DNA of 64,000 bases from Macrostomum lignano (Eukaryota): positions 98,269 through 162,268 of the forward strand of contig NIVC01002548.1 in assembly GCA_002269645.1 (NCBI GenBank), given 5' to 3'. Positions 13,297 through 49,300 of this stretch are shown piece by piece. Below the pieces are notes generated by a model. That model worked only from the letters and a program-made list of their open reading frames with translations. It ran no database searches and was not told the DNA's origin. The translations under genes were made by a program, and so were the position numbers. Position 1 is the first letter of the stretch. Each line of letters begins with the position of its first letter.

Positions 13297-14455
13297 CTAC
13301 TGCACAAGGCGATTTGGGGGATTCCTCACCCTAGTGCTTCTTCTTGTCGGAGCGATCTCTGGGGGAATCTCAGGCATATTAGTTTGTGGTTGTTGGTGAA
13401 CTTCCTCTTCTTCCTCATCGACTTCAGAGGCAGGAGCCAGCGGGCCGAATTGATTGTTTGAAGCCAGGTGTAGTTTGGCGCCCGTCAGTAGCCTAGAGGT
13501 GTTGTGCCCTTGCGACATCAGGAACTCAGCTCGAGAGCTGGTGGTGTCGCCGTTGGCCTTGAACTGCACCGGGTCGCCCTGCTGGAAGGTGGAGACCACC
13601 GGAACCCGAAGTCGCCGTCCTAGCACGAGCTCGGCAGGCGTTCGTCCGCGTGAATTTGAAGAATTGCGATGATGCAGCAGAGCCTTCTGCAAAAAAGCGA
13701 TTAAGCTGCCATGTGTTAGACGCTGTGTCCATGCCTGCAAGGCCTTCTTGATAGTCTGAACGGCTCGCTCAGCTGCACCATTAGATTGAGGGGAATATGG
13801 AGGGCTCTCCATCTTACGAGCACCGTTCTTTTCCAACCAGGCCAATAGTGGAGCTGAGGTGAACTCCGCTGCGTTGTCCGAAACAACCAGCTCCGGAACG
13901 CCAAAGCGAGTAAAAACCGTTCGCAGCGAGTTGATGACGCTGTCTGCTGATCTGTCCTTTGCGGGGAAAGCTTCTATCCAGCCCGAGTATGCATCAACCA
14001 CGATGAGAATGTTGCCGACGGCTGGTACAAAAGCCCAGTCCATGTGCACTCTTTGAAATGGAGCGGTGGCAGGTGGCCAAGTGTCCCGAGTTTTTTGTAG
14101 ACGAGGTCTTAACTGAGTGCATGCCTGGCATTGATGAACGAATTGCTCCACGTCCCTCTGCATACCGGGCCACCAACAGGTCTGTGCAAGCAACTTGTGC
14201 GCTGCGTTGGAACCCGTATGAGTGTCGTGCACTGCGTCGAAGGCCTCTCGTCTGAACCTTGGTGGAATGCATGAATGCTCGGCGGCGCATGTAGATCAGG
14301 CCATTCTCTAGGGTCAGGCATTCCGCGACTTTCTTTAAGGCTGCCTCTGCTTGTGTGCAGTCTCGCCAGTCACCCGACCGAATGCGGCGAACTATTCGTT
14401 GAAGGAGTCTGTCTGACTCAATTTCGGACGTAAAGTCGGTACGTCTGATGCTCAT
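13297..14455 (-). pseudogene. Gypsy integrase (HHCC + DDE) with upstream pol linker, frameshifted
   Basis: HDTH...CQAC zinc motif, HMDW, VSDNA, SNGAAERA. Frameshift (4-nt insertion) near 14270 separates ORFs 13994-14455 and 13297-14232. Confidence 0.9.
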
Positions 14456-20472: not shown

Positions 20473-23400
20473 ATGTCAAACACAACAGGCATGGCTAATT
20501 TGAATCTAACTGGTGATGATGGCACAGTGCCAACTGAGGATGAGGTTAACCCATGGGAGGTGCACGCCTCATCTGCTACTGGTGTGGACTATGACAAACT
20601 TATAAGTGAGTGCACTGCAGTGGATGCTAATTGTCTTCTCCTCTAAAATTTAATAGAGCCAACTTATAGACGATATGATACTCATTTTCAGAGATAAAAA
20701 GTCTAGAAAACACGGGGATTATTGCTTGGGTTATCAAGGTTGTCAAATTCCAGATTTCTATGAAACACTAGGATTACGACTATTGCTTCAGTTATCAAAG
20801 GTGTCAAATTCCAAATTTTTAGGAGACACGGGATTATTGCTTAGATTATCAGTGCTGTCAAATTCCAAGAAACACGGGGATTATTGCTTGGATTATCAGT
20901 GCTGTCAAATTCCAGGAAACACGGGGATTATTGCTTGGGTTATCAGTGCTGTCAAATTCCAGGAAACACTGGGATTATTGCTTAGATTATCAGTGCTGTC
21001 AAATTCCAAGAAACACTGGGATTATTGCTTGGATTATCAGTGCTGTCAAATTCCAGGAAACACGGGGATTATTGCTTGGGTTATCAGTGCTGTCAAATTC
21101 CAGGAAACACGGGGATTATTGCTTGGATTATCAGTGCTGTCAAATTCCAAGAAACACAGGATTATAGCTTGGGTTATCAGTGCTGTCAAATTCCAGGAAA
21201 CACGGGGATTATCGCTTGGGTTATCAGTGCTGTCAAATTCCAAGAAACACAGGATTATAGCTTGGGTTATCAAAGGTGTCAAATTCCAGATTTCCAGGAA
21301 ACACGGGGATTATTGCTCAAATATTTTGTTCCGAATTCCCACCTTGATGCCAGAGCGATTCGGCAGCAGTCCCATTGACTCAGCGCTGCTCAGCAAGTTC
21401 GAGACCGCCCTCGGCCAGCCTCCGCACTTCCTTCTTCGCCGCGGAATCGTGTTCTCCCACCGGGACATGGACCAGATCCTCGCGCTGCACAGTCAGGGCA
21501 AGCCCTTCTTTCTCTATACCGGACGGGGTCCCTCGTCCGAGGCGATGCACATGGGCCACGTGATTCCCTTCCTGTTCACCAAATGGCTGCAGGAGGCCTT
21601 CAACGTGCCGCTGGTGATCCAGATGACTGACGATGAGAAATTCCTGTGGAAAGATATCAGCTTGGAGACGGCCAGGAGTTACACTACCGAGAATGCTAAG
21701 TGAGAGCGCGGTGGGGAGCGATATTGCCTTTTGTGCTACTTTTAGTAGCATATAAATCGTATCAGTTATAAAAGCTTTATAAAAAGCTTTAGCTGAGACA
21801 TCATTAGAATCTCCCTCTACAATCCTTAGAATCGCCCTCTATTATCTTCAGAATCGCCCTCTATTATCCTCAGAATCGCCCTCTATTATCCTCAGAATCG
21901 CCCTCTATTATCCTCAGAATCGCCCTCTATTATCCTCAGAATCGCCCTCTATTATCCTCAGAATCGCCCTCTGTTATCCTCAGAATCGCCCTCTATGATC
22001 CCCAGAATCGCCCTCTATTATCTTCAGAATCGCCCTCTATTATCTTCAGAATCGCCCTCTATTATCTTCAGAATCGCCCTCAATTATCCTCACAATCGCC
22101 CTCTATTATCCTCAGAATCGCCCTCTGTTATCCTCAGAATCGCCCACTATGATCCTCAGAATCGCCCTCTATGATTCTCAGAATCGCCCTCTATGATCCT
22201 CAGAATCGCCCTCTATTATCCTCAGAATCGCCCTCTATTATCCTCAGAATCGCCCTCTATTATCCTTAGAATCGCCCTCTGTTATCCTCAGAATCGCCTT
22301 CTATTATCCTCAGAATCGCCCTCTATTATCCTCTGAATCGCCCTCTATTATCCTCAGAATCGCCCTCTGTTATCCTCAGAATCGCCCTCTGTTATCCTCA
22401 GAATCGCCCTCTATGATCCTCAGAATCGCCCTCTGTTATCCTCAGAATCGCCCTCTATGATCCCCAGAATCGCCATCTATTATCTTCAGAATCGCCCTCG
22501 ATTATCCTTGACTTACTTCTTGACTTAGCTGCAGGGCTGTCCCGAAGGGGACACAGCGGGAAGGCGCGGGCGCCCATTCCGCTAGTCCCTGAACGGCCGA
22601 CGCGTCGCTATGGACGGAGGGTTGGCGCCGCCCAGGGAGGTCCCCCAGTGTCGCCAGCAGCTATGGTGCTCTCTGGAAAGGAGAGTTCAGCCCTGCGGGT
22701 GGCCCGAAGGTAGCGCATGAGCTGATTAAAGTTTTCGGGTTTGCACGCTTGAGTAATAGATGTGTGTGGCCCGAGGTAAGTGAGTCTGGCCCGCGTGAAG
22801 GCGGGACAGATGCTGACGAAATGCTCAGCGGTTTCGTCACCTGAGTTGCAGAAGCTACAGGTGGCGTTGGTGGCGTTGCCCTGCAGGTACTGGTGCCTGG
22901 AGAAGCAGCCGTGACCAGAGAGGGTCATGGTGGCAGCCCGGATGTCTCTGCGCGAGAGGCGCAAGAGGAGCTTCCGGAGCTGGTGAGAGGGCTGAGGGAC
23001 AGCGTCTCTGGATTGCCTGCAGTTCGTGCGGTTCGCCCAAGTCGAGCGGTGCTGAGTCCTGATCCACGCTTTGATGCGCGAGTCGATGACACAGCCAGGA
23101 ATCGGGACAAGAGGTTCGGGGCCGAGAGAGGAGCCGGAGGCACCAACTTTTGCAAGGGTGTCAGCCAACTCATTTCCTCGGATCCCCACATGCCCCGGAA
23201 CCCACTTAAGGGTAATTTTGTTGGCGGAACCCAACATGTTGAGGAGTTTGATACAGTCGAGGACTGTAGCAGAGTTGGTGCTGCAGCCACTGATGGCGTG
23301 CAAGGCAGCTTGGCTGTCCGAATGGAAAATGATGTTCTTACCAGTGTTCTTCATCAGATTTACTGACGCAGATACGCAATGCTGTAAATTAATTTGCAGA

Positions 23401-26400
23401 CAGAATGTCGCTCCTTTGGCAGCGTGGAGCTTAGTCATACTGTATTAAATGCAGTGTCTGGCTAGAGCCCAGGGCCATCAAGGAGACTTGGACAACAGAT
23501 CGTCCTCGTCCCAGGCCGCTGGGGCTTGACTGGGAGATGGGAGTTGGTCGACGTCCATGGCCTCCTCACCCCCACCGGCCCCCCCAGCAGAGTCCTCAGG
23601 CTCCGATGACAGGATGGAGGAAGCTTCCTCACCTGCATCTTTACCTTCAGACCCCACCAGGGTGGCCGAGGAGAGCTCGGATTCCGAAGACCCGGCCTCG
23701 TCCTCAACTCCTTCTCCGACTGGCAGGTTTGGTTCCCGGGGCTTGGCCGGAGCCGTTACCACGGTCGCCGAACTGCTGCTAGCAGAGGGGCGAGACGCAG
23801 CTTTGGCTTTGGGATCGGCTTGCGCCTTTCCTTGGGCCTTAGACTGCGCCCCGCTCTTGCCGGAGATGCCGGGGTTGGCAGTAGCCTTCCCTTTGGCAGA
23901 CTTTCCTCGGCGCATCTTGAGCTTGAGGGCACCCAGCTGGAAAGAGGATCCATTAGGGTACCGACTCGCCCAAGTGCTGGAAAGGCCGAGGACAATTGAG
24001 TTGCCCGTCTCCCCCCTGCGGACTTTGCGGTGATACACCAGTCCACTAGCAGGGAGGTCGGGGTTCAGACGCAGTAGGACCCGGCGAATAACGTCTGGTC
24101 CAGCTGCGGTGCTCTTAGCAGGGACGAAAACCACATAGGGTATCGTCTTTGGACGCTGGCCCTCGCGAAGAAAAAGAGCTCCGCCAAGGTCAGCATCCAA
24201 GGAGACCGTCGGTAGCCACTGGAGCAGCTGCCGAGCGTTCTCCTCGCTGCTAGGAGCAATAAGAACGAATGTGCTTCGCAGCACCATCCGCTCAATGCCG
24301 ATGGAGATTCCCTCCTCGACAGTCAGCTCAATCAGATAGGAGTCAACAGCACTCCACACTTTTTGAAGCTGATCAGTGGTCCAGTCCTGGTCGCGACCTT
24401 GGATGATCACTCCCGGGAGTTTGGCCTTGGCCTTCGCCGCAAAGGTAGCTCCCGAAGGAACCTCCTTGTTGGCAGTGGCCATTTGTTGCGCCGTGGTTTC
24501 GGCCTCAGCAGCCGCAGCAGCATCTCCAGGGAGCGCCGCCGCTGAACTACCGGAGCTTCCACCGGCCGGCCCGTCTGGTTGCCTTGGGACGCCAGTCGCT
24601 TCAGCATCCATGGTGGACGCCGCCGCTTTGGCCCCCGCAGCTCCCTTCTTGGCCTGCCTTTTGGCGCGTTGTTTAGCGCGTTTGCGCTCAAGCCGAGCCC
24701 GCTGAGCTTCGTCGGATCTGCCAGATTTGGCCGGTCCTTTAGGCTCAGAGCTCGCGGTTCCCTTAGATCCACCAGCGGAGCTGGCAGGTCTTTGGGTATT
24801 TTGAGTTTGGTAGCTCTGGTCGAATCTGCCAGCAGAGCCAGCCGGTCCTTCCTTTGCCACAGTTGAATCAGTCGGTTGGGATCTGCCAGCAGGGCCGGCC
24901 GGTCCTTCGGACTGAGGTTGGGGTTTAGAAGGGTCCCCGTCCCTAGAAATAGCTTGTTTATCCATAGTCGGCTCGAAGGCCATGATAGAAGGTTGGTGGG
25001 CTACCCTCAAAGGGGCGCGGTACCCACCCGGCCGCTCCACCTGACCGGGCAGTAGGCCAATAGCACCCTCAAGGCTGGCCCGACACCAGGAGGGGACCGC
25101 TTGCGACCGGACTACTCCCCGGCCTTCCAGCCCATCGGCACGGTCAACACCTTAGGCATTAGAGAGTACGTTGAGCAGTACCACGGCCTGCAGGTTGGCG
25201 AGCCAGACCCGCATACCCAAATTCGGCCGAAGCCACTGGATAGGGTCGCCAGCGCCGGAGCCCAGTCTGTCCAGCAGCCCTAGGGACTGCCTTGAACACA
25301 CGCGGGGACGAGTACCCTGGGTCGACTTGCGAGACAGCGTGGGGGGGTCTGCGGCTGCCAGAGGCAAATAGAGGGTGCAGACCTCCCACCAGCCTTGACC
25401 TGCTGAAGATAGGGGCAGGCGTGAAGCATCGCAGACCTTAGCCCATGGGCCTAGTCTGTCTCATACTTCACTGGCATGCTGAATACGCCTTCGCGTGCAC
25501 CTTCGCGTGCGATTATCCTCAGAATCGCCCTCTATTATTCTCAGAATCTTCTCTATTATCTTCAGAATCGCCCTCTATGATCCTTAGAACCGCCCTCTGT
25601 TATCCTTAGAATCGCCCTCTGTTATCCTTAGAATCGCCCTCTGTTATCCTTAGAATCACCCTCTGTTATCCTTAGAATCGCCTTCTATTATCCTTAGAAT
25701 CGCCCTCTGTTATCCTTAGAATCGCCCTCTATTATCCTTAGAATCGCCCTCTATTATCCTCAGAATCGCCCTCTATTATCCTCAGAATCGCCCTCTATTA
25801 TCTTCAGAATCGCCCTCTATTATCCTCAGAATCGCCCTCTATTATCCTCAGAATCGCCCTCTATTATCCTCAGAATCGCCCTCTATTATCCTCAGAATCG
25901 CCCTCTATTATCCTCAGAATCGCCCTCTATTATCCTCAAAATCGCCGTCTATTATCCTCAGAATCGCCCTCTATGATCCTCAGAATCGCCCTCTGTTATC
26001 CTCAGAATCGCCCTCTATGATCCCCAGAATCGCCATCTATTATCTTCAGAATCGCCCTCTATTATCCTCAGAATCGCCCTCTGTTATCCTCAGAATCGCC
26101 CACTATGATCCTCAGAATCGCCCTCTATGATTCTCAGAATCGCCCTCTATGATCCTCAGAATCGCCCTCTATTATCCTCAGAATCGCCCTCTATTATCCT
26201 CAGAATCGCCCTCTATTATCCTTAGAATCGCCCTCTATTATCCTCTGAATCGCCCTCTATTATCCTCAGAATCGCCCTCTGTTATCCTCAGAATCGCCCT
26301 CTGTTATCCTCAGAATCGCCCTCTATGATCCTCAGAATCGCCCTCTGTTATCCTCAGAATCGCCCTCTATGATCCCCAGAATCGCCATCTATTATCTTCA

Positions 26401-28858
26401 GAATCGCCCTCGATTATCCTCAGAATCGCCCTCTGTTATCCTCAGAATCGCCCTCTGTTATCCTCAGAATCACCCTCTATTATCTTCAGAATCGCCCTCT
26501 GTTATCCTCAGAATCGCCCTCTGTTATCCTCAGAATCACCCTCTATTATCCTCAGAATCGCCCTCTGTTATCCTCAGAATCACCCTCTATTATCCTCAGA
26601 ATCGCCCTCTGTTATCCTCAGAATCACCCTCTATTATCCTCAGAATCGCCCTCTATGATCCCCAGAATCGCCATCTATTATCTTCAGAATCGCCCTCGAT
26701 TATCCTCAGAATCGCCCTCTGTTATCCTCAGAATCGCCCTCTGTTATCCTCAGAATCACCCTCTATTATCCTCAGAATCGCCCTCTGTTATCCTCAGAAT
26801 CACCCTCTATTATCCTCAGAATCGCCCTCTGTTATCCTCAGAATCACCCTCTATTATCCTCAGAATCGCCCTCTGTTATCCTCAGAATCACCCTCTATTA
26901 TCCTCAGAATCGCCCTCTGTTATCCTCAGAATCGCCCACTATGATCCTCAGAATCGCCCACTATGATCCTCAGAATCGCCTTCCCCAAGAATGTAGAATA
27001 AAAAAAACAATTTGCTATCAAGTTTGTTGCGCTACTCACAGTAGCACCTAAGCGCATGCATCCCCCAATCCGCCACCTTCCAGAGACATAATCGCCCTCG
27101 GCTTCGACCCCGAGCGCACGTTCATCTTCTCCGACCTGGACTACATCGGCTCGTCCCCGGAGTTCTACCGCAACATGTGCCGGGTGCAGAAGGCGGTGAC
27201 CTTCAACCAGGCCAAAGGCATCTTCGGCTTCACCGAGAGCGACTGCATCGGCAAGATCTCCTTCCCGGCTATCCAGGCTGCTCCATCGTTCTCATCGAGT
27301 TTCCCCCGGATTTTCAACTCCCGATCGGACATCCCCTGCCTGATCCCGTGCGCCATCGACCAGGATCCCTACTTCCGCATGACCCGGGACGTGGCTCCGA
27401 GAATCGGCTGCCCGAAGCCGGCGCTGCTGCACAGCACCTTCTTCCCTGCGCTGCAGGGCTGCCAGACTAAAATGTCCGCTTCGGATGCGAACTCGTCGGT
27501 CTTCCTGACCGACACGCCGAAGGCTGTGAAGGACAAGATTAACAAATACGCTTTTAGCGGCGGCGGCGCCACAGTCGAGGAGCATAAGAAGAATGGCGGC
27601 AACTGCGACATTGACGTGAGCTATCAGTACCTGCGATTCTTTCTGGACGATGACCAGCGATTGGAAAAGATTCGACAGGTGGGTTTTTTGTTCGGCCGAT
27701 TCCTAAGAGTCTCGTTTTCTTGGAGAGTTTATTTTAGGAATCATTCAGTGCTCTAGTTTCGGAGAATAGTCTAGTTTCTTACGAAACATCCGTCCATTCT
27801 CATTTCTAAGAATCGCCATCTATTCTCATTTCTAAGAATCGCCATCTATTCTCGTTTCTAAGAATCGCTATATCTATTATTATTTCTAAGAATCGCCATC
27901 TATTCACCTTTCTTAGAATCGCTATATCTATTATTATTTCCAAGAATCGCGTCTTTTCTCATTTCTAAGAATCGCCGTCTATTCTAAGAATCGCCATCTA
28001 TTCTAATTTCTAAGAATCGCCATCTATTCTCATTTCTAAAAACCGCCATCTATTCTCATTTCTAAGAATTGCCATCTATTCTCATTTCTAAAAACCGCCA
28101 TCTATTCTCATGTCTAAGAATCGCCATCTATTCTCATTTCTAAGAATCGCCATCTATTCTCATTTCTAAGAATCGCCATTTATTCTCGTTTCTAAGAATC
28201 GCCATTTATTCTCATATCTAAGAATCGCCATCTATTCTCATGTCTAAGAATCGCCATCTATTCTCATTTCTAAGAATCGCCATCTATTCTCATTTCTAAG
28301 AATCGCCATCTATTCTTATTTCTAAGAATCGCCATCTATTCTCATTTCTAAGAATCGCCATCTGTTCTCATTTCTAAGAATTGCCATCTATTCATTTCTA
28401 GGAACCGCCATCTATTCTCATTTCTAAAAACCGCCATCTATTCTCATTTCTAAGAATCGCCATCTATTCTCATATCTAAGAATCGCCATCTATTCTCATA
28501 TCTAAGAATCGCCATCTATTCTCATTTCTAAGAATCGCCATCTATTCTCATTTCTAAGAATCGCCATCTATTCTTATTTCTAAGAATCGCCATCTATTCT
28601 CATATCTAAGAATCGCCATCTATTCTCATATCTAAGAATCGCCATCTATTCTCATCTCTATGAACCGGCCACCCTTTGCCAATGAATTCCAACCCGCAGG
28701 ACTACAGCAGCGGCGATTTACTCACTGGCTACCTGAAGAAGGAGCTGATCGAGCTGCTGCAGGCATTCCTTAAGAGCCATCAAGAGAAGCGCAAAGCTGT
28801 CACTGATGAAGTTGTCAAACAGTTTATGACGCCCAGGAAGTTGAAATTCGACTATTAA
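20473..28858 (+). CDS. WARS1: Tryptophanyl-tRNA synthetase, cytoplasmic (4 exons)
   Basis: Exons 20473-20605, 21354-21699, 27084-27678, 28700-28858 join in frame (DKLI-K-RFGSS; ENA-K-DIIALG; IRQ|DYSSG). [25 protein letters not shown]-like [18 protein letters not shown] motifs. Confidence 0.97.
20700..21316. repeat. 47-bp minisatellite filling WARS intron 1
   Basis: Unit GGGATTATTGCTTGGATTATCAGTGCTGTCAAATTCCA(A/G)GAAACACG, 47-nt period, about 12 copies. Confidence 0.9.
21800..22508. repeat. 22-bp minisatellite, WARS intron 2 (left of LINE)
   Basis: Unit CAGAATCGCCCTCTATTATCCT. Confidence 0.95.
22608..23438 (-). CDS. Truncated LINE ORF2: APE N-terminus fused in frame to RNase H C-half plus C-terminal CCHC
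   Basis: [13 protein letters not shown] (APE start motif as in R1/LOA) joined directly to [13 protein letters not shown]...[23 protein letters not shown] (RNase H) and CSFC...[11 protein letters not shown]. No RT motifs anywhere. Confidence 0.85.
   Translation of the reverse strand: MTKLHAAKGATFCLQINLQHCVSASVNLMKNTGKNIIFHSDSQAALHAISGCSTNSATVLDCIKLLNMLGSANKITLKWVPGHVGIRGNELADTLAKVGASGSSLGPEPLVPIPGCVIDSRIKAWIRTQHRSTWANRTNCRQSRDAVPQPSHQLRKLLLRLSRRDIRAATMTLSGHGCFSRHQYLQGNATNATCSFCNSGDETAEHFVSICPAFTRARLTYLGPHTSITQACKPENFNQLMRYLRATRRAELSFPESTIAAGDTGGPPWAAPTLRP
23478..24983 (-). CDS. LINE ORF1 (gag-like), about 501 aa, uninterrupted
   Basis: First ATG at 24983 (MAFEPTM). Low-complexity basic/acidic termini around a globular core (GVIIQGRD...PYVVFVP...IVLGLS...[11 protein letters not shown]) resembling the DUF4780-type ORF1 of LOA elements (inference); no zinc knuckle seen. 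Confidence 0.8.
   Translation of the reverse strand: MAFEPTMDKQAISRDGDPSKPQPQSEGPAGPAGRSQPTDSTVAKEGPAGSAGRFDQSYQTQNTQRPASSAGGSKGTASSEPKGPAKSGRSDEAQRARLERKRAKQRAKRQAKKGAAGAKAAASTMDAEATGVPRQPDGPAGGSSGSSAAALPGDAAAAAEAETTAQQMATANKEVPSGATFAAKAKAKLPGVIIQGRDQDWTTDQLQKVWSAVDSYLIELTVEEGISIGIERMVLRSTFVLIAPSSEENARQLLQWLPTVSLDADLGGALFLREGQRPKTIPYVVFVPAKSTAAGPDVIRRVLLRLNPDLPASGLVYHRKVRRGETGNSIVLGLSSTWASRYPNGSSFQLGALKLKMRRGKSAKGKATANPGISGKSGAQSKAQGKAQADPKAKAASRPSASSSSATVVTAPAKPREPNLPVGEGVEDEAGSSESELSSATLVGSEGKDAGEEASSILSSEPEDSAGGAGGGEEAMDVDQLPSPSQAPAAWDEDDLLSKSP
25258..25510 (-). ncRNA. Predicted HDV-like self-cleaving ribozyme at the LINE 5' end
   Basis: Minus strand: P1 GCACGCG (25510-25504, duplicate 25498-25492) / CGCGTGT (25304-25298) with G1.U wobble; P2 GACCCA (25323-25318) / TGGG-C-TC (25264-25258); P3 GGG/CCC; L3 TACTCGT; P1.1 AC/GT; P4 GCAGTCC-CTA-GGGCTGC; J4/2 CAGA with catalytic C at 25269. 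Confidence 0.8.
25511..26985. repeat. 22-bp minisatellite, WARS intron 2 (right of LINE)
   Basis: Same unit as 21800-22508; recurring variant blocks suggest higher-order duplications. Confidence 0.95.
27796..28660. repeat. 26-bp minisatellite filling WARS intron 3
   Basis: Unit TCTAAGAATCGCCATCTATTCTCATT, 26-nt period. Confidence 0.95.
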
Positions 28859-29320: not shown

Positions 29321-29598
29321 GTTTGTAGCCTAGCGGTCAGAGCGTTGGACTAACGACTGAAAGGCCAGGGGTTCGATTCTCGATCCACTCGGAACAATTT
29401 GTGTCCTTGAGCAAGAGACACTTAACTCTGCATTGCTTCAGTTCACCCAGCTGTAAAATGGGTGCCAGAATTAGCTGGGGTAATTGAGGGTGTGTGGTGA
29501 CCCCCCAGTGCAATGGACTGAGCAGCGCCGCGCTATAGCTGCGGCTGAGCTGTCGGTTGCACATCTGGTCATTAGGGCAGGTGAAATCAAGAAAGGAC
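29321..29598 (+). mobile_element. tRNA-derived CORE-like SINE (copy 2)
   Basis: A box TAGCCTAGCGGTCAGAG, B box GGTTCGATTC, GTGTCCTTGAGCAAGAGACACTTAAC...CACCCAGCTGTAAAATGGG. Candidate 7-bp TSD CTCAAAG at 29314-29320 and 29599-29605. Confidence 0.88.
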
Positions 29599-32281
29599 CT
29601 CAAAGTGAGATTTAGGAGCTCAAAGTGAGATTTAGGAGCTGAAAGTGAGATTAGGGAGCTCAAAGTGAGATTTAGGAGCTGGAAGTGAGATTTAGGACCT
29701 TAAAGTGAGATTTAGGAGCTGGAAGTGAGATTTAGGACCTTAAAGTGAGATTTAGGAGCTGAAAGTGAGATTTAGGAACTGAAAGTGAGATTTAGCAGCT
29801 CAAAGTGAGATTTAGGACCTTAAAGTGAGATTTAGAACCCTAAAGTGAGATTTAGGAGCTGAAAGTGAGATTTAGGAGCTGGAAGTGAGATTCAGGACCT
29901 TTAAGTGAGATTTAGGAGCTCAAAGTGAGATTTAGGAGCTCAAAGTGAGATTAAGGAGCTCAAAGTGAGATTTAGGAGCTGGAAGTGAGATTTAGGAGCT
30001 GGAAGTGAGATTTAGGACCTTAAAGTGAGATTTAGGAGCTGGAAGTGAGATTTAGAAGCTGAAAGTGAGATTTAGGAGCTCAAAGTGAGATTTAGGAGCT
30101 GAAATTGGGATTTAGGACCTTAAAGTGAGATTTAGGAGCTGAAAGTGAGATTTAGGAGCTCAAAGTGGGATTTAGGACCTTAAAGTGAGATTTAGGACCT
30201 TAAAGTGAGATTTAGGAGCTAAAATTGGGATTTAGGACCTTAAAGTGAGATTTAGGAGCTCAAAGTGAGATTTAGGAGCTGAAATTGGGATTTAGGAGCT
30301 GAAAGTGAGATTTAGTAGCTCAAAGTGAGATTTAGGAGCTCAAAGTGAGATTTAGGAGCTCAAAGTGAGATTTAGGAGCTCAAAGTGAGATTTAGGAGCT
30401 CAAAGTGAGATTTAGGAGCTGAAAGTGAGATTTAGAAGCTGAAAGTGAGATTTAGGAGCTGAAAGTGAGATTTAGGAGCTTAAAGTGAGATTTAGGAGCT
30501 CAAAGTGAGATTTAGGAGCTCAAAGTGAGATTTAGGAGCTCAAAGTGAGATTTAGGAGCTCAAAGTGAGATTTAGGAGCTCAAAGTGAGATTTAGGAGCT
30601 CAAAGTGAGATTTAGGAGCTCAAAGTGAGATTTAGGAGCTCAAAGTGAGATTTAGGAGCTGAAATTGGGATTTAGGACCTTAAAGTGAGATTTAGGAGCT
30701 CAAAGTGAGATTTAGGAGCTGAAATTGGGATTTAGGACCTTAAAGTGAGATTTAGGAGCTCAAAGTGAGATTTAGGAGCTGAAATTGGGATTTAGGACCT
30801 TAAAGTGAGATTTAGGAGCTGAAATTGGGATTTAGGACCTTAAAGTGAGATTTAGGACCTTAAAGTGAGATTTAGGAGCTTAAAGTGAGATTTAGGAGCT
30901 GAAATTGGGATTTAGGAGCTGAAAGTGAGATTTAGTAGCTCAAAGTGAGATTTAGGAGCTGGAAGTGAGATTTAGGAGCTCAAAGTGAGATTTAGGAGCT
31001 GAAATTGGGATTTAGGACCTTAAAGTGAGATTTAGGAGCTCAAAGTGAGATTTAGGAGCTCAAAGTGGGATTTAGGACCTTAAAGTGAGATTTAGGACCT
31101 TAAAGTGAGATTTAGGAGCTGAAATTGGGATTTAGGACCTTAAAGTGAGATTTAGGACCTTAAAGTGAGATTTAGGAGCTGAAATTGGGATTTAGGAGCT
31201 GAAATTGGGATTTAGGAGCTGAAAGTGAGATTTAGTAGCTCAAAGTGAGATTTAGGAGCTGAAAGTGAGATTTAGGAGCTCAAGGTGAGATTTAGGAGCT
31301 TAAAGTGAGATTTAGGACCTCAAAGTGAGATTTAGGACCTCAAAGTGAGATTTAGGACCTCAAAGTGAGATTTAGGACCTCAAAGTGAGATTTAGGAGCT
31401 CAAAGTGAGATTTAGGAGCTCAAAGTGAGATTTAGGACCTCAAAGTGAGATTTAGGAGCTCAAAGTGAGATTTAGGAGCTCAAAGTGAGATTTAGGAGCT
31501 CAAAGTAAGATTTAGGACCTGAAATTGGGATTTAGGACCTCAAAGTGAGATTTAGGAGCTCAAAGTGAGATTTAGGAGCTCAAAGTGAGATTTAGGAGCT
31601 CAAAGTGAGATTTAGGAGCTCAAAGTGGGATTTAGGACCTTAAAGTGAGATTTAGGACCTTAAAGTGAGATTTAGGAGCTCAAAGTGAGATTTAGGAGCT
31701 CAAAGTGGGATTTAGGACCTTAAAGTGAGATTTAGGACCTTAAAGTGAGATTTAGGAGCTGAAATTGGGATTTAGGACCTTAAAGTGAGATTTAGGACCT
31801 CAAAGTGAGATTTAGGACCTCAAAGTGAGATTTAGGACCTCAAAGTGAGATTTAGGAGCTCAAAGTGAGATTTAGGAGCTCAAAGTGAGATTTAGGAGCT
31901 CAAAGTGAGATTTAGGAGCTCAAAGTGGGATTTAGGACCTTAAAGTGAGATTTAGGACCTTAAAGTGAGATTTAGGAGCTCAAAGTGAGATTTAGGAGCT
32001 CAAAGTGGGATTTAGGACCTTAAAGTGAGATTTAGGACCTTAAAGTGAGATTTAGGAGCTGAAATTGGGATTTAGGACCTTAAAGTGAGATTTAGGACCT
32101 TAAAGTTAGATTTAGGAGCTGAAATTGGGATTTAGGAGCTGAAAGTGAGATTTAGTAGCTCAAAGTGAGATTTAGGAGCTGGAAGTGAGATTTAGGAGCT
32201 CAAAGTGAGATTTAGGAGCTCAAAGTGAGATTTAGGACCTCAAAGTGAGATTTAGGAGCTCAAAGTGAGATTTAGGAGCTC
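29599..32281. repeat. 20-bp satellite (AGGAGCTCAAAGTGAGATTT), about 134 copies
   Basis: Exact 20-nt period across 2.7 kb with a few recurrent variants (GGACCTTAAAG, GAAATTGGGA). Confidence 0.97.
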
Positions 32282-46328: not shown

Positions 46329-49300
46329 GAGAGTCAATCAGAGGAGAGTAGAACCCGAGGCCAGCTCAAGCCTCTCAGACTCGCCCTGGCAGACTGGAAT
46401 GTGTTCCCTGAGACCACCGTGTTGGCACCTCAGCAGGCTGAGGGAGTTGTGTGCAACTGGCTGCAGACCACAGCTGCCCAGATGAAGCTGCTGGATGACG
46501 AATCCAGACTCTACGGCAAGGTGATCTTCGATCCGCTGGGTGAGTCCTGCCGTGGGACCCTGGCTTGTGAGCCGCTGACATGAGTAGTGAGGGCTGTGTG
46601 TGGACTGGATAGTGAGGGCTGAGTGTGGACTGGATAGTGAGGGCTGAGTGTGGACTGGATAGTGAAGGCTGGTTGAGGACTGAATAGTGAGGGCTGAGTG
46701 TGGACTGGATAGTGAGGGCTGAGTGTGGACTGGATAGTGGGGGCTGTGTGAGGACTGGATAGTGAGGGCTGAGTGTGGACTGGATAGTGAGGGCTGTGTG
46801 AGGACTGGATAGTGAGAGCTGTGTGTGCAGTGTAACTGGATAGTGAGGGCTGTGTGTGCAGTGTAACTGGATAGTGAGGGCTGTGTGTGCAGTGTAACTG
46901 GATAGTGTGGATCGGGTCTCTGACCTTCAAATATCCCTCCTCCCAAAGGTGAGCTGTACGACTTTGAGATCTCAACTCTGAGTTCGAAGATGCTCAGCCC
47001 GGGCTTCGGGAACTGGATGAGCACCCTGGCCAGTGGCGAGGTGCTGCTGGACATTGTGAACTGCCTCATCGACCACTGCCTGCCGGCCGCGGTTGGGAGA
47101 AATGAGGCTGGGAACATCTTCGAGGTGAGGGCTGTCTTGACAGGCTGCGACAGGTGGGACAATGCCTGTGACAGCTGGGGACACTGTCTGTGACAGGTAG
47201 GGACACTGTCTGTGACAGGTGGGGACACAGGTGGGGACACTGTCTGTGACAGGTATGGACACTGTCTGTGACAGCTGGGGACACTGTCTGTGACAGGTAG
47301 GGACACTGTCTGTGACAGCTGGGGACATTGTCTGTGACAGGTAGGGACACTGCCTGTGACAGGTGGGGACACTGTCTGTGACAGGTAGGGACACTGTCTG
47401 TGACAGCTGGGACAATGCCTGTGACAGCTGGGTACACTGTCTGTGACAGGTGGGACAAGCCTGTGACAGGTGGGACAAGCCTGTGACAGGTGGGACAAGC
47501 CTGTGACAGGTGGGTACACTGTCTGTGACAGGTGGGGACACAGGTGGGGACACTGCCTGTGACAGGTGGGGACACAGGTGGATTTCAATGCTGTCAAGGC
47601 ATTCTCAAGCATCCCAGAACGCCTCGAAATCCTGCAGATCATCACAGCCGAGCCGCTGAAGAAGGTCCGGTTGCTGGACGTCGCCCCCAACCAGCTGGCG
47701 GCCTGCATGTTTCTTGGAAACCACAACCGGCTGATTGACGATTTTCTGGACCCCCTGCTGGCCTCCGTGCGGGACATCGGGCTGCCGCCTCCAGGAGAGA
47801 AGCCGGGAACTGCGGGGAACATCCGGCAGGCCCTGCACCTCATTCGCCCCGTGGGACACAACCTGCTGCGGAGCTGCCACTCGACTAGGGTGAGAGTCAG
47901 ATTGCAGATCCCAGATCCCAGATCGCAGATCCCAGATCGCAGATCCCAGATCGCAGATCCCAGATCGCAGATCCCAGATCGCAGATCCCAGATCGCAGAT
48001 CCCAGATCGCAGATCCCAGATCGCAGATCCCAGATCGCAGATCCCAGATCGCAGATCCCAGATCGCAGATCCCAGATCGCAGATCCCAGATCGCAGATCC
48101 CAGATCGCAGATCCCAGATCGCAGATCCCAGATCGCAGATCCCAGATCGCAGATCCCAGATCGCAGATCCCAGATCGCAGATCCCAGATCGCAGATCCCA
48201 GATCGCAGATCCCAGATCGCAGATCCCAGATCGCAGATCCCAGATCGCAGATCCCAGATCGCAGATCCCAGATCGCAGATCCCAGATCGCAGATCCCAGA
48301 TCGCAGATCCCAGATCGCAGATCCCAGATCGCAGATCCCAGATCGCAGATCCCAGATCGCAGATCCCAGATCGCAGATCCCAGATCGCAGATCCCAGATC
48401 GCAGATCCCAGATCGCAGATCCCAGATCGCAGATCCCAGATCGCAGATCCCAGATCGCAGATCCCAGATCGCAGATCCCAGATCGCAGATCCCAGATCGC
48501 AGATCCCAGATCGCAGATCCCAGATCGCAGATCCCAGATCGCAGATCCCAGATCGCAGATCCCAGATCGCAGATCCCAGATCGCAGATCCCAGATCGCAG
48601 ATCCCAGATCGCAGATCCCAGATCGCAGATCCCAGATCGCAGATCCCAGATCGCAGATCCCAGATCGCAGATCCCAGATCGCAGATCCCAGATCGCAGAT
48701 CCCAGATCGCAGATCCCAGATCGCAGATCCCAGATCGCAGATCCCAGATCGCAGATCCCAGATCGCAGATCCCAGATCGCAGATCCCAGATCGCAGATCC
48801 CAGATCGCAGATCCCAGATCGCAGATCCCAGATCGCAGATCCCAGATCGCAGATCCCAGATCGCAGATCCCAGATCGCAGATCCCAGATCGCAGATCCCA
48901 GATCGCAGATCCCAGATCGCAGATCCCAGATCGCAGATCCCAGATCGCAGATCCCAGATCGCAGATCCCAGATCGCAGATCCCAGATCGCAGATCCCAGA
49001 TCGCAGATCCCAGATCGCAGATCCCAGATCGCAGATCCCAGATCGCAGATCCCAGATCGCAGATCCCAGATCGCAGATCCCAGATCGCAGATCCCAGATC
49101 GCAGATCCCAGATCCCAGCGCACGCCTCTCCCACAGGAGTGGACCTGGAAGGCGCTGATGTTGCTGGTGCTCATCCTGATGGCGCTGTGCGGCAGCCTGA
49201 CCGCAGAGCAGGAACACCTGTTCAGCTGCCTCACCGGGGAGTTCGATGCCTCCCAGCTGGTTGTCCCGGAGCTGCAGCTCGCGCTGAGCGCCATCCAGCA

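Follow-up and report, generated by a model that had tools for sequence, protein, structure and literature searches.

The LINE copy and its insertion site

The window analysed here (a 64-kb stretch of Macrostomum lignano DNA) includes a WARS intron with a 22-bp satellite, and in this satellite we found an internally deleted copy of a non-LTR retrotransposon (LINE), inserted antisense to WARS (Table 1). The phase of the satellite is regained once the LINE and one copy of the target-site duplication (TSD) are taken out. Together, the TSD and the regained phase place the 5' end of the LINE at G25510. The preliminary description of this DNA had taken the same G for the first nucleotide of the element. 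It is correct that the predicted ribozyme cut falls on the base that directly follows the TSD, but because the base after the 3' TSD copy is also a G, so that a G adjoins both copies, the LINE start is defined only to within 1 nt; the TSD may be 10 bp long, and G25510 may belong to it.

Table 1. The LINE copy, its flanks and the segments of the predicted ribozyme fold (positions in the window)
Feature	Coordinates	Strand	Remarks
Upstream 22-bp satellite array (on the LINE's own strand)	25512..26980		flank
5' target-site duplication AGGATAATC	25511..25519	-	identical to 22500-22508
Internally deleted non-LTR retrotransposon (LINE) copy	22509..25510	-	3,002 bp; interrupts the 22-bp satellite
P1 5' strand copy a, GCACGCG	25504..25510	-	7/7 pairs with 25298-25304; predicted cut 5' of G25510
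P1 5' strand copy b, GCACGCG	25492..25498	-	identical to copy a; alternative predicted cut 5' of G25498
J1/2 peripheral domain	25334..25491	-	predicted branched set of four hairpins
P2 5' strand	25318..25333	-	CCCA 25321-25318 solid; 25326-25323 and 25332-25329 optional
P3 5' strand GGG	25315..25317	-	
L3 UACUCGU	25308..25314	-	U25314/G25309 candidate reverse-wobble pair; fits the U..CG pattern (PMC6326823)
P3 3' strand CCC	25305..25307	-	
P1 3' strand CGCGUGU	25298..25304	-	directly after the P3 hairpin
P1.1 3' strand GU	25296..25297	-	G25297-C25312, U25296-A25313
P4 hairpin	25273..25291	-	8 bp (25291-25284 with 25280-25273), 3-nt loop, -11.6 kcal/mol
J4/2 CAGA plus extra C25265	25265..25269	-	C25269 candidate catalytic cytosine; CRRA consensus from PMC6326823
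P2 3' strand	25246..25264	-	UGGG 25264-25261 solid; 25257-25254 and 25249-25246 optional
ORF1	23478..25040	-	520 aa as listed; first ATG 24983; without Pfam domain
ORF2 remnant	22608..23438	-	about 30 aa of APE N-terminus joined to C-terminal RNase H half plus Cys-His motif
3' UTR	22509..22607	-	6-bp hairpin 22553-22538 plus AAGTCA-type terminal repeat
3' target-site duplication AGGATAATC	22500..22508	-	9 bp
Downstream 22-bp satellite array	21806..22508		flank

The 9-bp TSD, ORF1, the APE stub, the half RNase H and the short 3' terminal repeat assign the element to the APE-type non-LTR retrotransposons; RT is absent from this copy and present in its relatives P0019 and P0021. Both APE and RT are deleted from the ORF2 remnant (compare P0021 and P0003), in which the Pfam RNase_H match covers profile positions 58-140 only. 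ORF1 shares 98% identity with M. lignano entries of UniRef (the homologue search returned three M. lignano chimeras only), and a more diverged ORF1 with 87% identity is represented by P0002. A second homologue search with the non-repetitive core of ORF1 found nothing. The same 5' UTR segment occurs at three other M. lignano loci, two of which encode RT. In the M. lignano proteins P0019 and P0021 this segment and ORF1 are joined to APE/RT sequence, thus the LINE family is autonomous. P0019 agrees with the whole predicted ribozyme core (25346-25170) without any amino-acid difference, and P0020 and P0021, which like P0019 represent other M. lignano loci, do so over 25283-25170. Judged by these sequences, the copy at 22509-25510 is a deletion derivative of the autonomous family and, lacking APE and RT, could move only in trans. 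It had previously been called an RT-less element, which is true of this copy only; the family has RT. No second LINE was found among the large ORFs of the window. The current M. lignano gene models wrongly splice the LINE 5' UTR into host genes.

The predicted ribozyme fold

The minus strand between 25510 and 25246 contains, in the order of a nested double pseudoknot, P1, J1/2, P2, P3, L3, P3', P1', P1.1, P4, J4/2 and P2', the predicted fold spanning about 265 nt from the first base of the LINE. P1, P2, P3, L3, P1.1, P4 and J4/2 follow one another in the order and at the distances laid down in the published descriptor of HDV-like ribozymes, which specifies G1-Y, U..CG in L3 and CRRA in J4/2 (PMC6326823). 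The preliminary description had proposed P1, P3, L3, P1.1, P4 and a CAGA in J4/2, and all of these were found on the minus strand where it had placed them. It had also pointed to a long J1/2, which was borne out: this domain measures 180 nt from P1 copy a and 168 nt from copy b, the two P1 5' strands being carried by a 12-nt tandem duplication (25510-25499 and 25498-25487). P1 consists of six Watson-Crick pairs and a G1.U pair at the cleavage-site end, has no mismatch and falls in the expected range of 6-7 bp. The L3 closed by the 3-bp P3 has the conserved U...CG.

The candidate also has features that deviate from the descriptor. Position 2 of L3 is an A, where the descriptor fixes a C. P1.1 has two Watson-Crick pairs, the outer being A-U instead of C-G (canonical CC/GG). 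This had been interpreted as a compensatory swap unlikely to arise by chance, an argument that we cannot uphold, because a single sequence is not covariation and the complementarity has a chance probability of about 1/16. The joiners of P4 are 4 and 3 nt long. The earlier reading of J4/2 as C-A-G-A was right for 25269-25266 but overlooked the unpaired C25265 between CAGA and U25264, the first base of P2', thus J4/2 is effectively CAGAC. P2, which had been named as the weak point, indeed has just 4 contiguous base pairs, where at least 5 are expected and about 7 are typical. A drawing of P2 as 4+4+4 bp with two internal loops is possible, but this extension to 12 bp is matched by 16% of shuffles and is not significant. 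The alternative P2 partner UUGGGU, reported at 25216-25221, is in fact one base off, at 25220-25215. An alternative J4/2 (CGAA 25225-25222, followed by UU and UGGGU 25219-25215) would require P4 to be a domain of 70 nt, which fails to close, and was judged less likely than CAGA(C)/UGGG. The P2 5' strand has a stronger distal partner at 25211-25185 (-18.3 kcal/mol), and C25511 (position -1) could lengthen P1 onto G25297, in competition with P1.1.

Possible chance resemblance or loss of activity, and the predicted site of cleavage

A GC-rich, highly structured LINE 5' UTR, in which the structure serves promoter function, translation or packaging, might resemble an HDV-like ribozyme by chance, and it must be noted that the author of the preliminary description had searched specifically for this motif. 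In dinucleotide shuffles of the 471-nt 5' UTR, with P1 fixed at nt 1, 34% of the shuffles had a partner somewhere that could serve as P1', and the window showed no excess of the P3/L3/P1.1 core alone (4 observed vs. 5 expected). The HDV-type models of Rfam gave no match at gathering score in the whole window and none at E<=10 in 701 nt or in the 106-nt core. This miss weighs little, because the models are lineage-specific, blind to pseudoknots and penalise a 170-nt J1/2. What speaks against chance is the joint arrangement anchored at nt 1. A P1' partner directly flanked by P3/L3/P3'/P1.1 occurred in 16 of 200,000 shuffles, and when CRRA and a P2 of at least 4 bp were also required, the number dropped to 3 (1.5e-5). 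Even with relaxed rules and a P1 start allowed anywhere in the first 15 nt, the full motif appeared in only 4 of 40,000 shuffles (1e-4). The fit to the HDV-like descriptor is far beyond chance (approximately 1e-5 to 1e-4).

On the two strands of the window (128 kb) the candidate at the LINE 5' end was the sole match to a descriptor that tolerates an extra base after CRRA and wider P4 joiners; a stricter version misses it. If P1 is not required, 0.145 matches to the core plus CRRA and P2 are expected from shuffles. The unconstrained MFE and centroid structures of RNA 25498-25266 recovered P1 (copy b), P3 and P4 (z = -2.26), which also argues against a fortuitous resemblance. The nested part of the fold lies 10-17 kcal/mol above the unconstrained MFE, thus the pseudoknot helices are needed for it to compete. 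Taken together, we consider a chance origin of the fold very unlikely. No further copies of the ribozyme core or of the 5' repeat were found in the window. As comparators, relatives of the RNase H ORF from insects (Exocentrus, Episyrphus) and fragments from metagenomes were tried and rejected: all six loci were AT-rich and either fragmentary or 5'-truncated, and none had a descriptor match. There were no full-length elements among these insect relatives, and metagenome contigs scanned for the exact pattern of the core, with P1' unconstrained, yielded 0 matches.

In our opinion this family of M. lignano LINEs is likely to encode, in its 5' UTR, an HDV-like self-cleaving ribozyme, a nested double pseudoknot with a large structured J1/2, and the LINE 5' end is probably a new member of a known ribozyme class, newly seen in M. 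lignano. The LINE would be transcribed as part of a longer RNA, in which its first 7 nt would pair with 25304-25298 to form P1, and the core consisting of P3, L3, P1.1 and J4/2 would assemble. C25269 and a bound Mg2+ would then catalyse transesterification 5' of G1, and the freed LINE RNA, starting exactly at the first base with a 5'-OH, would be the template for target-primed reverse transcription. With the cleaved RNA as template, it would be understandable that the genomic copy has G1 as its first base, immediately next to the TSD. Catalysis, the choice between G25510 and G25498, the dependence on read-through and any role in translation are inferred.

It is also conceivable, but in our view unlikely, that the fold goes back to a genuine HDV-like ribozyme which is now dead or very slow, and that the 5' end is set otherwise, e.g. 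by an internal promoter. The short P2 (4 bp), the additional C of J4/2 and the A-U pair in P1.1 would be responsible for this; in a Leishmania SIDER ribozyme a 3-bp P2 results in very low activity (PMC4035085). Such a relic would be consistent with the deviations from the descriptor, with the non-significant P2 extension and with the copy being a deletion derivative. Well-folded yet inactive candidates are known, namely in the R2 elements of sow bug and horseshoe crab (PMC3774820) and in the SIDER1-beta elements of T. brucei and T. congolense (PMC4035085). It is harder to reconcile with a relic that the genomic 5' end lies exactly at the predicted G1, and the 98% identity of the ORF1 copies, together with the identical core in an RT-bearing copy, points to recent amplification with the same 5' UTR.

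Another possibility, about which we are doubtful, is that a real ribozyme cuts 5' of G25498, using the inner P1 copy, and that the outer unit of 12 nt was added at integration or by later slippage and does not mark the true 5' end of the RNA. The two P1 copies are identical, and with the satellite leader included the fold constrained to P1b was 3 kcal/mol better than that constrained to P1a. Moreover, 5' duplications creating two alternative P1 sites have been described for R2 (PMC3774820, Fig. 8 text). However, an RNA cut at G25498 would give rise to copies without the outer unit, whereas the TSD-flanked copy begins with G25510, and the GCAC/GUGC hairpin between the 12-nt units is weak.

A more far-reaching reading, a promoter-less LINE family that lives in satellite arrays, relies on read-through and, having two equivalent tandem P1 strands, can be cut at two alternative sites separated by 12 nt, seems to us quite unlikely. 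If it were true, an APE-type LINE would offer a live example of what has been proposed for R2 in the 'duplicated P1 shifts cleavage site' model. The earlier suggestions that a promoter-less LINE is cut out of satellite read-through transcripts, and that the antisense orientation spares the WARS pre-mRNA, are speculation based on a single copy.

The freeing of LINE RNA from longer transcripts by a 5' ribozyme is an already known route, and the general picture of LINE ribozyme use is unchanged by the M. lignano candidate. M. lignano, whose genome is very rich in repeats, serves as a transgenic model of regeneration. If the HDV-like ribozyme is active, the range of HDV-like 5' processing includes an APE-type LINE with RNase H from a free-living flatworm; the flatworm cases that we found in the literature were only predicted planaria R2 ribozymes and Schistosoma twister variants. 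An active ribozyme would also explain uniform LINE 5' ends originating from read-through transcripts, the 5' module would aid the annotation of full-length LINE copies, and structure-function work would gain a naturally occurring ribozyme in which a large J1/2 is combined with an unusual A-U pair in P1.1 and a 5-nt J4/2.

Comparison with known ribozymes

HDV-like ribozymes cut at the 5' junction of R2, R4/Dong, RTE, Baggins and L1Tc elements (PMC3774820). It is interesting to compare the M. lignano candidate first with those of R2 and R4 (Dong), which likewise occupy the 5' end of non-LTR elements and have a P1 of 6-7 bp, a P3 of 3 bp and the conserved U/C/G in L3. They also share with it a large J1/2, documented from 23 to >700 nt in R2, and a variable P4 (PMC3774820). 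In Drosophila R2 and in R4/Dong the cut falls at the first base of the element, as predicted here, and duplicated P1 sites at the 5' end, such as those of the M. lignano LINE, have been described for R2 (PMC3774820). The elements themselves differ: R2 has a restriction-like endonuclease, is specific for 28S rDNA and is co-transcribed by Pol I, whereas the M. lignano LINE has an APE stub, RNase H and a 9-bp TSD and is inserted in a satellite. Many R2 ribozymes take upstream 28S bases for P1, whereas P1 of the M. lignano LINE is wholly internal.

A large structured J1/2 (P1.2) domain is also present in the RTE-associated drz-Agam-2 (PMC4908430), where it is formed by a single P1.2 helix and not by several predicted hairpins as in the M. 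lignano LINE. In drz-Agam-2 P1 and P2 are 'pinched' together by a P2 that is extended to about 12 bp (PMC4908430), whereas the M. lignano extension has two internal loops and no statistical support. A P1.1 made up of a U-A and a C-G pair can be read, by our own reading, in the sequence of drz-Mtgn-1 printed in PMC10879173.

The L1Tc/NARTc/ingi Pr77 ribozymes of trypanosomatids resemble the M. lignano case in that an APE-type LINE, and likewise its RT-less derivatives, carry an HDV-like ribozyme at nt +1 (PMC3185411, PMC4035085); such derivatives with a ribozyme are already known as NARTc, RIME and SIDER (PMC3185411, PMC4035085). P1.1 is non-canonical in both, the active L1Tc ribozyme having a P1.1 of 1 bp (PMC3185411). 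In Pr77 ribozymes downstream sequence can weaken activity through alternative pairing (PMC3185411, PMC4035085). In contrast to the M. lignano fold of about 265 nt, L1TcRz is compact (77 nt), and it doubles as an internal promoter. Perere-3 of Schistosoma mansoni belongs to a different LINE clade (RTE-like, single ORF) and its ribozyme is a twister variant, not HDV-like, but it is, as the M. lignano candidate would be, a 5' self-cleaving ribozyme situated beside the TSD of a flatworm LINE (PMC8501958).

The HDV-like motif at the 5' end of the LINE

In this window, which comes from the flatworm Macrostomum lignano, the HDV-like structural arrangement at the 5' end of the LINE was confirmed, and it goes far beyond chance. 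Each of the pairings listed in the preliminary description was found in the minus-strand sequence (Table), together with two features absent from that description: an unpaired C25265 between the CAGA and the first P2' base, and a P2 of only four contiguous pairs (CCCA/UGGG). P2 could be extended to three segments of 4 bp each (25318-25321/25264-25261, 25323-25326/25257-25254, 25329-25332/25249-25246); 16% of shuffled P2 strands pair equally well, thus the extension is no evidence. A 12-nt tandem duplication at the element's 5' end creates an identical second P1 strand at 25498-25492, and either copy may be the one used.

Table. Features of the LINE insertion and of the candidate ribozyme
Feature	Position	Strand	Description
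22-bp satellite arrays	21806-22508 and 25512-26980		enclose the insertion
9-bp direct repeat	25519-25511 and 22508-22500		AGGATAATC; flanks the insertion
LINE insertion	25510 down to 22509	minus	3,002 bp; between the two 22-bp satellite arrays
5' UTR		minus	about 470 nt (470-471)
ORF1	23478-25040	minus	
Second ORF			276 aa; first ~30 residues are the APE endonuclease start, fused straight to the RNase H C-terminal half and a Cys-His motif
3' UTR			short; terminates in AAGTCA-type repeats
WARS exons	about 21400-21703; about 27370-27700; 28676-28858	plus	KMSAS in the second
P1	25510-25504 with 25304-25298	minus	GCACGCG with CGCGUGU
P3		minus	GGG/CCC
L3		minus	UACUCGU
P1.1		minus	AC/GU
P4	25291-25284 with 25280-25273	minus	clean 8-bp hairpin, -11.6 kcal/mol
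J4/2	C25269	minus	CAGA; C25269 is the candidate catalytic base

The descriptor was coded from PMC6326823 (G1-Y, 3-bp P3, L3 of the form U...CG., 2-bp P1.1, CRRA, P2 adjoining P3). In the whole window, on both strands, the P3/L3/P1.1 core by itself was not enriched (4 found vs. 5.1 expected). For the core with CRRA and a P2 of 4 bp or more, 0.145 occurrences were expected in 128 kb, and one was found, at this site. What decided against chance was the position of the motif, with P1 at the element's first base. When the 471-nt 5' UTR was dinucleotide-shuffled with P1 fixed at that base, 34% of the shuffles contained some stretch of the UTR able to pair with P1, but a partner directly after P3/L3/P3', followed by P1.1, occurred in 16 of 200,000, and one so flanked with CRRA and P2 in 3 of 200,000. 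Relaxed rules, with P1 starting anywhere in the first 15 nt, gave the full motif in 4 of 40,000 dinucleotide shuffles. We regard a genuine HDV-like ribozyme, which cuts read-through transcripts so that they begin with the first base of the element, as the best explanation and a rather likely one.

Predicted folding and catalysis

P1, P3 and P4 were all present in the unconstrained MFE and in the centroid of RNA 25498-25266 (z = -2.26), in both of which J1/2 folded as four hairpins. With the satellite leader included and the pseudoknot strands held free, the nested part of the fold lay 10-17 kcal/mol above the MFE, about what P2 could give back, thus the fold is plausible but not dominant. In such a model co-transcriptional folding would matter. 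The 5' strand of P2 (25318-25335) has a distal partner at 25211-25185 (minus strand, CGGGUCUGGCUCGCC...), which at -18.3 kcal/mol is stronger than the proposed P2'. By analogy with L1Tc, where an attenuating helix downstream of the ribozyme was described (PMC3185411), this helix could be a competitor or attenuator.

Three sequence features make the predicted catalysis less certain: P2 is short, J4/2 has an additional C, and one P1.1 pair is A-U. The -1 base is C25511 at the outer site and U25499 at the inner site (minus strand). At either site it could extend P1 onto G25297, competing with the P1.1 pair C25312-G25297; in published R2 and L1Tc work P1 extension of such kind moderately lowers cleavage.

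The insertion, its setting and its family

The base beyond the 9-bp repeat is G on both sides, thus the insertion boundary is certain to within one base; satellite phase is restored when the insertion and one repeat copy are taken out. Because the WARS exons on either side are encoded by the plus strand, the LINE is antisense within a WARS intron. The proposals in the preliminary description that the element is promoter-less and excised from satellite read-through transcripts, and that its orientation spares the WARS pre-mRNA, are speculative. Its ORF1, in which no Pfam domain was found, is 98% identical to three M. lignano UniRef entries, and its second ORF, an APE start joined to half an RNase H, shows that the element is an internally deleted LINE. 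The 3' UTR contains a hairpin whose 6-bp stem carries a CUUC loop (UGUCCC-CUUC-GGGACA, 22538-22553, minus strand) and ends (22509-22530, minus strand) in the imperfect repeat AAGTCA-AGAAGT-AAGTCA instead of poly(A); hairpin and terminal repeat may be an RT recognition module.

The WARS introns are full of four tandem arrays (20821-21289, 21806-26980, 27796-28664, 29594-32281) with units of 47, 22, 26 and 20 bp. The 22- and 26-bp units share a AGAATCGCC core, and the 47-bp array creates a long spurious ORF reaching into a WARS exon. Elsewhere in the window there is a 959-aa ORF without Pfam match in a GC-rich block (46338-49217, minus strand), overlapped by several long ORFs on both strands, and an integrase remnant (rve and H2C2 zinc finger; 13297-14232, minus strand) from an LTR retrotransposon or retrovirus-like element.

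No second copy of the candidate core was found within the window. A profile-free search with the translated 5' UTR identified three further M. lignano gene models carrying it as an 'exon'. In the protein entry P0019 amino-acid identity was complete over nt 25398-25342 and 25346-25170, which takes in all of the core, P2 and P2' included, the sole difference being a 1-nt length change in the J1/2 C-run (C7, 25341-25347, minus strand), deduced from a switch of protein frame. In P0020 and P0021 identity was complete over 25283-25170. As the copies are identical, they offer no covariation. P0019 and P0021 run on into ORF1, APE and RT (YADD) sequence, thus the 5' UTR comes from an autonomous, recently amplified family, of which the window copy is a deletion derivative; the earlier term 'RT-less element' fits this copy but not the family. 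The RNase H ORF has relatives in insects (34-50% identity), which were fragmentary and gave no descriptor match.

The three gene models behind P0019, P0020 and P0021, which have segment 25170-25283 (minus strand) as an apparent exon, are the UniProt entries A0A1I8IE52, A0A1I8G3E6 and A0A1I8JA99. This exon starts after CCCUAG (AG acceptor inside P4), ends before GUACUC (GT donor at about 25169) and is joined to ORF1 in two of the three; either the annotation is a chimeric error or the LINE 5' UTR is truly spliced.

Comparison with known ribozymes

Rfam HDV-type models did not match the candidate, which carries little weight as these models are lineage-specific, pseudoknot-blind and penalise a 170-nt J1/2. 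The literature search found no substantive link between Macrostomum and ribozymes; among other flatworms, planarian R2 ribozymes were predicted (PMC3774820), and Schistosoma Perere-3 has twister variants (PMC8501958).

Cleavage at the element's first base by HDV-like ribozymes is established for R2 (Drosophila), R4/Dong, RTE, Baggins and L1Tc (PMC3774820). In R2 the J1/2 loops range from 23 to more than 700 nt, and it was suggested that the site of cleavage moves where P1 sites are duplicated at the 5' end (PMC3774820). In Agam-2 ribozymes J1/2 is large and structured, and P2 measures 12 bp (PMC4908430). The L1Tc ribozyme is active with a single-pair P1.1, and NARTc, the RT-less partner of L1Tc, carries the same ribozyme (PMC3185411, PMC4035085). 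In the drz-Mtgn-1 sequence printed in PMC10879173 we parse P1.1 as U-A plus C-G. HDV-like ribozymes at LINE 5' ends are already known, and the M. lignano LINE adds a candidate case.
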